A DNA stretch of 64,000 nt from Macrostomum lignano (GCA_002269645.1 NIVC01002744.1:43393-107392); one strand, 5' to 3'. Numbered from the stretch's first letter, positions 11,321 through 34,796 are shown. Numbers and translations: made by a program. Notes: generated by a model from the sequence alone, not told the origin.

Positions 11321-14300
11321 TCAAAACTTGCCAGCAGGCAGGTCCAGTTTGCCAAAGCCCGTGTGCATCTCATGGTTGCTGATCACTTCAAGGTCGGAGC
11401 TGGAAAAAGTGAAAACAGAAGTTTAAATTAGGTGACTTACTTAAATTTCAACACGGACTCGGCCGAGCCTCACCTGCGTTGGCTGGCGCCGCTGTCCCTC
11501 ATCTCGATGTCATTCTTGGAGCAGCTGCAGTGCGGGCGGGATGCGACGGCTTTGCTTATTTGGAATTCGGCTTATTATGCAGGAAACCCAACGAGCTCCG
11601 GATCGGCAAACTCCGGCCCTGCCCACAAAGCCTCTTTATCCGGCCCTCCGGTCCTTTGACACTTCACAATAGCAATCCGCGCCGTTCGAGGTTTGTGTCT
11701 TCTCAGCTCCCTTCCCTCCTCTTCTCTCCCCTCTCTTCTCTCCCCTCTCTTCTCTCCCCTCTCTTCTCTCCCCTCTCTTCTCTCCCCTCTCTTCTCTCCC
11801 CTCTCTTCTCTCTCCCCTCTCTCTCCCCTCTCTTCTCTCCCCTCTCTTCTCTCCCCTCTCCCCTCTCTCTCTCTCTCTTCTCCCCTCTCCCCTCTCTTCT
11901 CTCCCCTCTCCCCTCTCTTCTCTCCCCTCTCCCCTCTCTTCTCTCCCCTCTCCCTCTCCCCTCTCCCCTCTCTTCTCTTCCCTCTCCCCTCTCCCCTCTC
12001 TTCTCTCCCCTCTCCCTCTCTTATCTCCCCTCTCCCCTCTCCCCTCTCTTCTCTCCCCTCTCCCCTCTCCCCTCTCTTCTCTCCCTCTCCCCCTCCCCTC
12101 TCTTATCTCCTCTCTCCCCTCTCCCCTCTCTTCTCTCCCCTCTCCCCTCTCCCCTCTCTTCTCTCCCCTCTCCCCTCTCCCCTCTCTTCTCTTCCCTCTC
12201 CCCTCTCCCCTCTCCCCTCTCCCCTCTCTTCTCTCCCCTCTCCCCTCTCCCCTCTCTTCTCTCCCCTCTCCCCTCTTCCCTCTCTTCTCTCTTATCTCCC
12301 CTCTCCCCTCTCTTATCTCCCCTCTCCCTTCTCCCCTCTCCCCTCTCCCCTCTCCCCTCTCCCCTCTCTTCTCTTCCCTCTCCCCTCTCTCCTCTCTTCT
12401 CTCCCCTCTCTTTTCTCCCTCTCCCCTCTCCCCTCTCTTCTCTCCCCTCTCCCCTCTCCCCTCTCTTCTCTCCCCTCTCCCCTCTCTTCTCCCCCCTTTT
12501 CTCTCCCCTCTCCTCTCTCCCCTCTCCTCTCCTCTCCTCTCCTCTCCTCTCTTCTCTATTCCCTCTCCTCTCTCCCCTCCTGTAGCCTGTAGTCATGAAT
12601 GAGCTGGGTTCTCTATCTGGCTCTTATGATAAAAAGTTTGCCGATCGCAGAGCTCAGGAATGGAAACCTATGGATGTCTAAGAGGAACTCCCAGCTACGG
12701 TATTTCAGATGGGAAAAAAAGTCACAGACGGGAGACCCCAACCTGCTTAACAGCTAAACAACTTACAGCATTTCGCGATGCAGGTCCATGCTGCGATCGA
12801 GGGCTCTGGAGTGGAAAGCCGTGTGATCTCAGTTGAAAGAAAATTTAAGCACAATAAAATCCAATTTGCTTCCACAGCAGTTGCCAAGCGGAGCTGCTCA
12901 CCGATTTTCAACTCCGCTGCTTCGTCTGAAATTCGAATTTACATCCGCGTGTCTCAATCAGTTCAAATTAAAAAAAATTTAGCCAACAGAACAATGCAAC
13001 AGGTGACAAACTATTAGAAATTTGTGCTTACCTGTCTTCACTGCCGCTGCTGGCGGCGACACTGCGACCGGCACCGGATCTGAAAAATTTCATCGACCGG
13101 GGAGTTTAAAGTAGTCACGCGATCTGCACCTGCACGAAACTGCATAGATAATCATAATTACAGGAAATCGCGTGACTGTCTAATCATCGGGCATGGGGAC
13201 TCTGTGAGTCTCGGGGATTCGCACAACAACTTCCTTGGACCAGTTTTTGTGCCACCAAGACAAAAGAGACAAAGGGACATTGCGCAATCTTACTGGTCAT
13301 TGTCATGCCGTCCGACATCTGACAGGATCTCAGCGTAGGTGGTGTAGCCCAATCTGAAACACGCATTGCGAAAGTTCAAATTTAAATCCGAAACAGGTGA
13401 AACTTCTGAGAGATTCTGGACTCACCCTTCAGTGCTTGGGATCGCGGCAGCGGCACTGGCTGAGCTGACGGTGCCGAGTTGAGCCGTGTGCCGATCGCAG
13501 ACTCTGCAAAGCAGCCAATGTGCAATTATGAGCAGTCTGAGTGAGATTATTGGTGAACAAGGTGAACAAGTATGTGACTCACAGATAAGTGGGCCAGTCT
13601 GCCGGCTGGGCCCTAAAGGAGTATTGCAAATTGTATTACTCATTGCTAATGAGTGCTAATAAGGTGAAGTTTTGAGTAGAGTGCTGCCAGTAGTAGTAAC
13701 AAAGATTTCTCTTAAATGATGACTCACTCAGCAGTTTCCTTATGGTCCGCCTTAGTGCAACAGCAAACTATGGCGCCTAAAGTGGTCTGGTCCTTATTAC
13801 TGAAAATAAGGAAAGCATTACTGAATGTTTCTGCGCAATAATTTCCCAGATTGTAATGAAAATACAGCGGTTTCCTCGCTGGGGTTTCCCCGCTGAGGTT
13901 TCCCCGCTGGGGTTTCCCCGCTGGGGTTTCCCCGCTGGGGTTTCCCCGCTGGGGTTTCCCCGCTGGGGTTTCCCCGCTGGGGTTTCCCCGCTGAAGTTTC
14001 CCCGCTGGGGTTTCCCCGCTGGGGTGTCCCCGCTGGGGTTTCCCCGCTGGGGTTTCCCCGATGGGGTTTCCCCGCTGGGGTTTCATGGTGAATTTTCACG
14101 TCTGACTGTCTGAAGCCTACCGAAGTCGAACCCCCAGCGTGACGCCGACCGCAATGACGCAGGCCGCCACCACGGCTGCGCAGCTCCCCGCGATGATGGC
14201 GGCGAGATTCTGCGGGCCTCCGCCTTGTTGCCATGCGGTGAACTTGGCGAACCCAGCCGTTCTGCACTGCGTGGAGCTGCAGCCGCTGAGGGCTACAAAG

Positions 14301-33700: not shown

Positions 33701-34796
33701 GTTTTTATTGTTCGTTAAGATACTCAAATCCGCATTTGATTAGATAGGTAGTTTGGTAGGTAGATAGGTATGTAGATAGGTAGGTAGATAGGTAAGTAGA
33801 TAGGTAGGTAGATAGGTAGTAGGTAGATAGGTAGGTAGATAGGTAGGTAGATAGGTAAGTAGATAGGTAGGTAGATAGGTAGGTAGATAGGTAGGTAGAT
33901 AGGTAAGTAGATAGGTAGGTAGATAGGTAGTAGATAGATAGGTAGGTAGATAGGTAGGTAGATAGGTAAGTAGATAGGTAGGTAGATAGGTAGGTAGATA
34001 GGTAGGTAGATAGGTAGGTAGATAGGTAAGTAGATGGGTAGGTAGATAGGTAGGTAGATAGGTAAGTAGATGGGTAGGTAGATAGGTAGGTAGATAGGTA
34101 GGTAGATAGGTAGGTAGATAGGTAGGTAGATTAGGTAGGTAGATAGGTAGGTAGATTAGGTAGGTAGATAGGTAAGTAGATAGGTAGGTAGATAGGTAGG
34201 TAGATAGGTAGGTAGATAGGTAGGTAGATTAGGTAGGTAGATAGGTAAGTAGATGGGTAAGTAGAAAGGTAGGTAGATAGGTAAGTAGATGGGTAGGTAG
34301 ATAGGTAAGTAGAAAGGTAGGTAGATAGGTGAGTAGATAGGTAGATAGATAGGTAAGTAGATAGGTAAGTAGAAAGGTAGGTAGATAGGTAAGTAGATGG
34401 GTAGGTAGATAGGTAAGTAGAAAGGTAGGTAGATAGGTGAGTAGATAGGTAGATAGATAGGTAAGTAGATAGGTAAGTAGAAAGGTAGGTAGATTAGGTA
34501 GATAGATAGGTAAGTAAAGTAAATAGGTAGCAGGGTAGTTGGGAGGGTAGGTAGGTAGGTAGGTAGGTAGGTAGGTGGGTAGGTAGGTACGTAGGTAGGT
34601 AGGTAGGTAGGTAGGTACGTAGGTAGGTAGGTGGGTAGGCATTTAGGTTGGTTGGTATTGCAGGTAATTAGGTAGGTAGGTGGGTAAGGTAGGTAGGTAC
34701 CAGTAGGTAAAAGATCTTACCCGTAGGGCATCTGACTGCCCAGAGAGCCAGCAGCAGCAGGGCCCGGGTATTTCTGCAGCTCAGTGTCCGCAGCAT
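27701..34796 (-). CDS. Receptor-like gene C, a ~398-aa type I membrane protein with a Tyr-rich tail. Exons 34796-34721, 33557-33413, 32172-31795, 31434-31378, 31246-31211, 30661-30590, 30495-30451, 30383-30345, 29651-29589, 29355-29308, 29221-29159, 28302-28207, 27868-27824, 27734-27701
   Basis: In-frame join of 1197 nt. Signal peptide MLRTLSCRNTRALLLLALWAVRCPT. Exon 2 has the same 145-nt length and phases as in gene A and shares PC..A.L.Q..NPR..G.L.VLL..P..RV.CS. Tail motifs are YNY, AYEQP, EYIYDVL, NPYDEA, SAYGA, SAYMYM, LEYQR. A further 24-nt exon near 29728-29751 is possible. Confidence 0.78.
32303..33200. repeat. Two adjacent 20-bp arrays (TGTCTGACAGGGGTTATCAG, then TGACTAGCAGGTGTAATTAG) in gene C intron 2
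   Basis: The same seed is present as only 3-4 units at 14560-14640 and 23830-23910. Confidence 0.93.
33745..34710. repeat. GATAGGTAGGTA/GGTA compound microsatellite in gene C intron 1
   Basis: Same intron position as (GATA)n in A and B. Confidence 0.95.

Follow-up and report, generated by a model that had tools for sequence, protein, structure and literature searches.

A three-gene cluster of Macrostomum lignano predicted to encode receptor-like proteins with a shared ectodomain exon and two unrelated, modular cytoplasmic tails

Introduction

Vertebrate paired receptors (KIR, LILR, SIRP and PILR) have linked, near-identical ectodomains on different cytoplasmic tails and arise by duplication and exon exchange. 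Among invertebrates, the Alr proteins of Hydractinia are type I membrane proteins with immunoglobulin (Ig) domains, a membrane-proximal fibronectin type III (FN3)-like region and immunoreceptor tyrosine-based activation motifs (ITAMs), and they form a large family (PMC9546547). In this study, we have analyzed a 64,000-nucleotide stretch of the genome of the flatworm Macrostomum lignano (GCA_002269645.1 NIVC01002744.1:43393-107392), hereafter called the window, which contains a cluster of three neighboring minus-strand genes, designated A (11321-16162), B (18700-26061) and C (27820-34796). A preliminary description of the window had read this interval as an unrecognized receptor cluster in which related ectodomains sit on two unrelated tails, the layout of paired immune receptors and of allorecognition loci such as Alr.

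The cluster resembles the vertebrate paired receptors in its linked, near-identical ectodomains on different tails, in its signs of duplication and exon exchange, and in one tyrosine-rich tail type with a match to the immunoreceptor tyrosine-based inhibitory motif (ITIM) consensus. Unlike them, it has no short-tailed member with a basic transmembrane residue, no ITAM, no detected Ig or C-type-lectin domain and no detected sequence homology, and the identity between A and B is very recent, introns included. Like Alr, it is an invertebrate cluster that is unrecognizable by sequence, with tyrosine motifs in its tails and alternative splicing; unlike Alr (PMC9546547), it comprises three genes with one small, possibly FN3-like domain, no ITAM and no homology, in a family of at most about 10 clusters (50% identity) across the whole library searched. 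A different parallel is offered by the anti-Lepore hybrids of hemoglobin, in which a hybrid gene, consisting of the 5' part of the downstream gene and the 3' part of the upstream gene, lies between its two parents, with an in-frame junction in a conserved exon. The M. lignano cluster has the same arrangement; here, however, the two halves of the hybrid diverge by ~0.5% and about 5-8%, respectively, and the partners differ completely in their 3' exons.

We conclude, with a probability of roughly 70%, that these genes belong to a lineage-restricted, receptor-like family whose modular phase-2 tail exons have been shuffled by non-allelic recombination.

Results

Micro- and minisatellites occupy about half of the 23.5 kb, and few introns are free of them; for this reason, the open reading frame (ORF) track is fragmentary and many of its long "ORFs" are translated repeats. 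Gene models were built with UniProt M. lignano fragments as a guide; splice sites were read directly and complete ORFs were then assembled. Genes A, B and C are each predicted to form one complete spliced ORF in which every intron is GT-AG: A has 10 exons and encodes 342 amino acids, and the other two each have 10 exons plus an optional 63-nt cassette, encoding 350 or 371 (B) and 348 or 369 (C) amino acids. The outer ends, the TGA stop codon of A (11321-11323) and the ATG of C (34794-34796), coincide exactly with the cluster limits proposed earlier (11321-34796). A poly(A) hexamer follows the stop codon of A (AATAAA, after 86 nt) and of B (ATTAAA, after 79 nt); neither hexamer occurs in the 900 nt after the stop codon of C.

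The splice junctions recur in independent predicted UniProt M. lignano models, namely, P0001, P0002 and P0013 for gene C, all of which match C exons at 95-100%, and P0007, P0009, P0010 and P0015 for gene A, with P0010 being 100% identical to the A tail exons. Given these shared junctions and the absence of indels from the B and C tail exons, we judge the predicted exon chains to be coding beyond chance. A search for contigs, from transcripts or another assembly, that encode P0001, P0003 or the unspliced transmembrane-exon ORF found nothing on record. In the UniProt set (P0001 to P0015), near-identical family members bear conflicting names, and several models hop between frames within exon 3; these hops suggest indel errors in the assembly behind them.

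Three other readings of the exon structure were rejected. The A tail is not a translation of the 14-bp minisatellite at 13869-14084, which is open in every frame, since that array is intronic; in the ORF that spans it, only the last 72 nt are an exon (the CCC cassette), and the remaining A tail exons lie further downstream. The 130-residue C-terminal extension of P0009 is not an alternative 3' exon of A: it is antisense to a plus-strand protein kinase exon (8684-9235) and is therefore an annotation artifact. Finally, the cluster is not a variable/constant locus of the protocadherin or UGT1 type, since each unit has its own tail exons and stop codon (and, in the case of A and B, its own poly(A) hexamer) and no constant exons are shared.

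Each predicted protein, a putative type I membrane glycoprotein, has an N-terminal hydrophobic leader and a single membrane pass. One 19-residue Kyte-Doolittle peak of at least 2.4 is found per protein, at residues ~170-198, followed by R-x-R, and the N-glycosylation sequons (one to three per protein) lie only N-terminal of the transmembrane segment. The ectodomain, of ~145 residues with four conserved cysteines, is split over two exons, and its segment GLTKDTEYFVALSGC is found in all three gene copies. With complete GT-AG ORFs, a leader, one transmembrane peak and junctions shared with UniProt models, the three spliced type I membrane protein genes of the preliminary description largely hold.

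Two tail types, unrelated to each other as had been claimed (BLASTP of A-type against C-type, E=0.75), follow the transmembrane segment. The A-type tail is Ser/Asp-rich and has a CCC cassette and one GYTTYAEIL exon (exon 6). With exon 6 it has 142 residues and two tyrosines, and without it 122 residues and none. Exon 6 is the best conserved A-tail exon in P0009 and is included in P0009, P0010 and P0015, which are all three of the UniProt models that cover the region. The CCC motif noted earlier is therefore present, in exon 4, and a tail of ~120 residues holds only for the form that lacks exon 6; the statement that the A tail has no tyrosine was wrong, because the exon chain behind it omitted exon 6 (13294-13353). 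The C tail has 149 residues and 10 tyrosines, or 170 residues and 11 tyrosines with its cassette, which agrees with the earlier count of about ten tyrosines but not with the length of ~200 residues. Overall, C-type tails contain 10 to 12 tyrosines (6.5-7%), many of them in an acidic or N-x-A-Y setting.

In both tail types, the introns that follow the transmembrane exon are all in phase 2, and all internal tail exons are multiples of 3 nt (72, 78, 60, 48, 39 and 51 nt in A; 45, 63, 48, 63, 96, 24 and 33 nt in B and C). The donor of the transmembrane exon, CG|gtaggc, is conserved in all three genes. The tail exons can therefore be skipped in frame, and either tail fits the transmembrane-exon donor; the UniProt models do differ in the cassettes that they include or skip. 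In five C-type mini-exons (C, 27977-30495; B, 18858-21619), a tyrosine stands in an N-x(1-2)-Y context, in most cases after alanine (SNAY, ENPY/ENAY, NSAY, NSAY and NRAY), and the C-type tail may have grown as an exon with a Tyr motif was duplicated in series. Multi-tyrosine docking tails and transmembrane adaptors (LAT, PAG and nephrin) are similar in being disordered and acidic, with YxxP, YxxM, YDxx and YxxL/V motifs; this likeness is one of composition only, without homology, and the motif counts are not above those of shuffled controls.

Gene B joins parts of its two neighbors, as the preliminary description had claimed in placing the ectodomain of A on a C-type tail. Its exons 1 and 2 are 100% identical to those of A, the ectodomain part of exon 3 is identical too, and the two genes are 98.3-99.5% identical over ~3.4 kb, a tract that includes introns and 5' flank and extends from exon 3 back to a 16-mer minisatellite that precedes exon 1. 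A three-way comparison of exon 3 gives B the state of A at each of the 11 informative sites as far as position 297 and the state of C at seven of the eight from position 314; the switch (23451-23468) is in frame and lies inside the transmembrane-coding segment. Past it, B follows C, with tail exons 78-100% identical and unique intron flanks ~92% identical. The gene order is C, then the hybrid B (5' part of A, 3' part of C), then A. Model P0007, in which B-specific tail residues run into the ectodomain and tail of A, matches the order of B followed by A; we take P0007 to come from the older ML2 assembly. Judged by this mosaic, B is a true recombination hybrid of its neighbors. Unequal crossing-over between C and A would give exactly the topology of B, and gene conversion from A to B with its end in exon 3 would have the same outcome. 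Directly after the stop codon of B, ~600 bp have no counterpart after that of C (18097-18713 versus 27821-27834).

Alternatively, B could be an error of assembly, a haplotype or homeologue copy that was mis-joined or duplicated; the real locus would then hold only C and A. The published assembly of the repeat-rich, hidden-polyploid M. lignano genome is redundant, with 180 Mb of non-repetitive blocks at an identity of at least 95%, and 15% of the genome is simple or tandem repeats (PMC5730564); the near-identical ~3.4-kb tract and the minisatellite half of the locus also speak for this reading. Against it, the tails of B and C are about 5-8% apart and differ by indels too, including the ~600-bp one after the stop codon; (TAGA)n has 95 copies in intron 1 of A and 252 in that of B; the breakpoint is a clean in-frame switch within an exon; and P0007 links B-specific tail residues to gene A, although the assembly behind it may share reads with this one. 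On balance, we regard an assembly artifact as unlikely.

The exons of the cluster differ sharply in how they have diverged. Between B and C, the ectodomain part of exon 3 has no nonsynonymous and four synonymous differences (nonsynonymous divergence [dN], 0; synonymous divergence [dS], 0.065), and exon 3 is conserved far above its intron flanks. Exon 2 of C has diverged anciently from that of A and B, with 44% amino acid identity, a dS of ~0.94 and a dN of ~0.55. In these comparisons, exon 3 acts like a conserved hinge, with a variable module on its 5' side and alternative modules on its 3' side. Exon 3 (31795-32172, 14121-14495 and 23387-23764) is about 97-99% identical among the three genes, at synonymous sites too, and this uniformity could reflect exon-limited gene conversion or nucleotide-level constraint. 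Diverged second copies with open frames exist for both the A-type tail (P0009) and the C-type tail (P0003 and P0008); therefore, the two-tail split is older than those copies.

In the B and C tails, there are 24 nonsynonymous and 6 synonymous differences (dN/dS, 1.17). This ratio is one cue for another reading, in which B, and possibly A, are decaying by-products, nonfunctional chimeras from unequal crossing-over whose tails are not under selection; B also holds the odd state at five to six of the six B/C differences covered by other family members (e.g., YDVL to YDVP), and C has the missing hexamer mentioned above. Decay nonetheless appears unlikely, since all 10 or 11 exons of each gene are open and have canonical splice sites and no indels, although indels accumulate in the introns beside them (in the tails of B and C, the exons have none and ~960 nt of adjoining intron have about 14 gap events), and since the second, diverged copies of both tail types have kept their frames open. 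B also retains all ten shared tyrosines, an outcome that at 13% replacement is expected about once in four.

The range of the family was examined with a HMMER profile search of a library of 1.84 billion protein representatives, with clusters defined at 50% identity. Ten proteins were found, all from M. lignano; the conserved exon has no database relatives other than M. lignano UniProt proteins (67-96% identity), several of which match exons of the window at 100%, and the A-type and C-type tails, searched separately, are present only on this ectodomain. Pfam gave no family at an E value of ≤10, including no match to fn3 (PF00041) or uroplakin-3, and PDB sequence and profile searches gave nothing meaningful. 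Among everything searched, the predicted family is restricted to Macrostomum, with no match to a well-characterized family. The term "unrecognized" of the preliminary description is apt in that no Pfam, PDB or non-Macrostomum match was found, but fragmentary UniProt models already exist. The names of those models (F5/8 type C, FN3, LamG, Ricin B lectin, ANF receptor, PLAT, Transposase and Zonular occludens toxin) were disregarded as domain leads, because near-identical sequences bear contradictory names and Pfam supports none of them.

AlphaFold2 predicted the ectodomain to be all-beta, with seven strands, at low confidence (predicted local distance difference test [pLDDT], 37.7 from a single sequence and 45.6 from an eight-row alignment, the latter with a predicted template modeling score of 0.42). 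With the pLDDT-45.6 model, the top Foldseek matches in the PDB were FN3 domains (E, ~0.01; template modeling score, 0.4-0.6), among them the FNDC5/irisin entry 4lsd and FN3 domains of LAR/PTPRD, mixed with C2 domains; for this low-confidence model there was no match at an E value of ≤0.001, and there were no Ig-type top matches. Because both AlphaFold2 runs had low confidence, the Foldseek result is only a hint that the ectodomain may be an FN3-like sandwich. Single-domain or membrane-proximal FN3 proteins (receptor protein tyrosine phosphatases, NCAM and FNDC5) are similar in domain size, seven predicted beta strands and juxtamembrane place; they differ in that the present ectodomain has no Pfam fn3 match, a model pLDDT of 45.6, Foldseek E values of 0.01 or more and four cysteines with a CxxxxC loop atypical of FN3.

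Table 1. Predicted features of the M. lignano gene cluster (window positions)
Feature	Position	Strand	Remarks
Gene A: A/B-type ectodomain + A-type tail	11321..16162	-	complete ORF, all GT-AG; tail junctions used in P0007, P0009, P0010, P0015
A exon 1: ATG + signal-peptide-like leader MRAATGLSASLPAVLLQLLSLCLRCLL	16081..16162	-	splice reading
A exon 2: ectodomain N-terminal half, 2 Cys, 2 N-glycosylation sequons	14809..14953	-	44% amino acid identity to C exon 2
A exon 3: ectodomain C-terminal half (GLTKDTEYFVALSGC) + transmembrane segment + RLR; phase-2 donor CG|gtaggc	14121..14495	-	
A exon 4: 72-nt cassette NKDQTTLGAIVCCCTKADHKETA (CCC exon)	13728..13799	-	in P0009; skipped in P0007, P0010, P0015
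A exon 5: VCDRHTAQLGTVSSASAAAAIPSTE	13426..13503	-	
A exon 6: 60 nt, LGYTTYAEILSDVGRHDNDQ, Tyr-bearing, TxYxxI match	13294..13353	-	20/20 residues identical in diverged copy P0009
A exon 7: SGAGRSVAASSGSED	13032..13079	-	
A exon 8: ALDRSMDLHREM	12767..12805	-	skipped in P0015
A exon 9: CSKNDIEMRDSGASQR	11474..11524	-	skipped in P0015
A exon 10: SDLEVISNHEMHTGFGKLDLPAGKF + TGA stop	11321..11399	-	AATAAA 86 nt downstream
Gene B: hybrid, A-type 5' part + C-type tail	18700..26061	-	
B exon 1	25980..26061	-	100% identical to A exon 1
B exon 2	24079..24223	-	100% identical to A exon 2
B exon 3: ectodomain half + transmembrane segment, A-like/C-like mosaic	23387..23764	-	
B exon 3 breakpoint interval (exon positions 297-314, transmembrane-coding)	23451..23468	-	equivalent in A 14182-14199
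B tail exon 4: GSNVYEQPSATELT	21575..21619	-	
B tail exon 5: EYIYDVPNEGQSGQTSQQPD	20107..20169	-	
B tail exon 6: ENAYDEAEPDSQSTV	19826..19873	-	
B optional cassette: MQNFAAVPNSAYGASRAYGG	19674..19736	-	exact match to P0007 N-terminus
B tail exon 7: RQAATGSAANSAYMYMGAEGPSNSGGTLEYQ	19082..19177	-	
B tail exon 8: WQNGTEN	18970..18993	-	
B tail exon 9: AYEANSQAES	18858..18890	-	
B tail exon 10: AIEYALLPVKSK...NGGTAT + TGA stop	18700..18838	-	ATTAAA 79 nt downstream
Gene C: C-type N-terminal half-ectodomain + C-type tail	27820..34796	-	P0001, P0002, P0013 matches 95-100%
C exon 1: ATG + leader MLRTLSCRNTRALLLLALWAVRCPT	34721..34796	-	
C exon 2: ectodomain N-terminal half	33413..33557	-	vs A/B exon 2: dS ~0.94, dN ~0.55
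C exon 3: ectodomain C-terminal half + transmembrane segment	31795..32172	-	ectodomain part vs B: 0 nonsynonymous, 4 synonymous
C tail exon 4: DSNAYEQPSPVEMT	30451..30495	-	
C tail exon 5: EYIYDVLNEGQSGQTSQQPA	29589..29651	-	
C tail exon 6: ENPYDEAEPDSQSTV	29308..29355	-	
C optional cassette: MQNFDAVPNSAYGASRACGG	29159..29221	-	used in P0013, P0008, P0014
C tail exon 7: RQAATGSAANSAYMYMGAAGPSNSGGTLEYQ	28207..28302	-	
C tail exon 8: WQNGTEN	28095..28118	-	
C tail exon 9: AYEASSQAEL	27977..28009	-	
C tail exon 10: DIEYSLVPVKSK...NGAVTP + TAA stop	27820..27958	-	
Near-identical A/B tract (98.3-99.5%)	A side 14199..17623; B side 23468-27522		transmembrane-coding breakpoint to 16-mer minisatellite upstream of exon 1

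The genes on both sides of the cluster are ordinary. The kinase exon at 8684-9235, on the plus strand and convergent with gene A, matches Pkinase (E=2.5e-25), contains an HRDIKLKN motif and covers the C-terminal half of the kinase domain. Upstream, on the minus strand, lie an exon of the Endonuclease/Exonuclease/phosphatase (Exo_endo_phos) family at 39002-39544 (E=6.9e-07) and GDA1/CD39 nucleoside phosphatase exons at 45956-48071 (E=1.3e-40 and 5.2e-09), the ORF of which is broken by a translated repeat. No further family members were found in the window, and no C-type tail exon remnants were found downstream of A; Rfam and tRNA scans of the window gave no matches.

Between 10482 and 35500, nearly all introns and spacers of the cluster have their own micro- or minisatellite, with units of 4, 7, 9, 12, 14, 16, 17, 20, 24 and 26 bp. 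This repeat load fits the published figures for M. lignano, whose genome has 15% simple and tandem repeats, a mean intron length of 1.1-1.4 kb and a mean gene length of 7.5-9.4 kb (PMC5730564). Large tandem-repeat arrays also lie outside the cluster (1187-1910, 3795-4478, 49065-55969, 56552-57931 and 59395-60558), and within them a block of ~7 kb at 49-56 kb is about 80-85% self-similar.

Discussion

Our preferred interpretation, a lineage-restricted, receptor-like family with shuffled modular tails, can be set out as follows. The proteins would be cell-surface receptors or adhesion-type molecules, in which the N-terminal half-domain encoded by exon 2 may be the variable, ligand-facing part. 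The conserved exon 3 would act as a homology hinge for exchanges between genes. The C-type tail may serve as a multi-site phosphotyrosine docking or sorting scaffold that is tuned by cassette splicing, and the same ectodomain would be coupled differently inside the cell by the A-type tail, perhaps by way of a palmitoylated CCC motif and a single TxYxxI motif. We infer that B is a young chimera with a tail that is free of amino-acid-level constraint.

Several of our own results weigh against this interpretation. The dN/dS of ~1.2 suggests that B, or the tails generally, may be under little constraint. Matches to ITIM, YxxM, YxxP and YxxPhi are no commoner than in shuffled tails (P ~0.2 each), and the recurrence of N-x(1-2)-Y or AY, with a shuffle P of ~0.01-0.03, was noticed post hoc. 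The low pLDDT and the lack of a Foldseek match at an E value of ≤0.001 leave the modeled fold uncertain. The two duplicated halves of B differ ~10-fold in divergence (A/B 5' parts, ~0.5%; B/C tails, about 5-8%); a single unequal crossover, by contrast, predicts the same age for both. A further event is therefore needed, either a later A/B conversion or an exchange that involved diverged haplotypes or homeologues, unless conversion acted by itself. In addition, with a single window of a redundant assembly (PMC5730564) in view, a mis-joined copy is possible.

In the paired-receptor or allorecognition interpretation, A and B would offer the same ligand-binding domain and send opposing signals through their tails, C would have a variant specificity, and selection would keep the locus for self/non-self or partner recognition. 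The layout on which the preliminary description relied, a shared ectodomain on swapped tails in a tandem cluster, is indeed present: the linked genes A and B have near-identical ectodomains and unrelated tails, and the N-terminal half-domain has diverged between A/B and C (44% amino acid identity; dN, 0.55), in contrast to an invariant membrane-proximal half. Exon exchange is also a source of real paired-receptor families. Both tail types carry tyrosine motifs; the C-type tail is 6.5-7% tyrosine and keeps a single ITIM-consensus match in both genes (IEYSLV in C, IEYALL in B), and the TxYxxI match in the A tail arises in 1% of shuffles.

Several observations weigh against the immune and Alr analogy. 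There is no ITAM pattern in any of the tails and no charged residue (K, R, D or E) in the transmembrane segments (IIAGSCAAVVAACVIAVGVTLGV and the B and C variants), basic residues included. The cluster has no short-tailed member, both tail types being long (122-142 residues for A), and no Ig or C-type-lectin domain was detected in the ectodomain by Pfam (E≤10) or PDB sequence search. Shuffled tails match the ITIM consensus at least once in 21-23% of trials (P ~0.2), which is chance level. The ~99.5% identity of A and B includes introns and 5' flank and therefore reflects recent recombination or conversion rather than ectodomain selection or a long-maintained pairing. The tail dN/dS of ~1.2 also counts against the idea, as does a total of ~10 clusters at 50% identity library-wide, which is not a large diversified family. 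M. lignano is, moreover, a solitary, noncolonial worm. As an analogy, this interpretation draws on architecture and fails the defining features that can be tested; it is not supported, and we consider it improbable.

It can also be envisioned, again by analogy, that the cluster belongs to a flatworm-specific recognition system with an unrelated fold, in which the hinge exon (membrane-proximal half-domain and transmembrane segment) would be a recombination module that repeatedly re-pairs variable N-terminal half-domains with alternative signaling tails. Such a system would be a functional counterpart of vertebrate paired receptors and would allow an outcrossing hermaphrodite to discriminate between partners, between sperm or between self and non-self. 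We give this proposal little credence relative to the lineage-restricted family with recombination-shuffled tails.

In conclusion, the models presented here provide correct full-length structures for three genes that public data represent only by fragmentary, frame-hopping and inconsistently named predictions. They document a clean in-frame gene birth by non-allelic recombination inside a transmembrane-coding exon, and their uniform phase-2 mini-exons show a route to the modular swapping and splicing of cytoplasmic tails. No result demonstrates a "paired receptor" function of the immune type. For now, the cluster represents a lineage-restricted family with a putative function; such families are common in the M. 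lignano genome, and the finding is fairly ordinary. If the proteins are indeed signaling receptors that give distinct outputs from one ectodomain, the cluster would provide an entry to cell-surface recognition in a transgenic, regenerating flatworm model.

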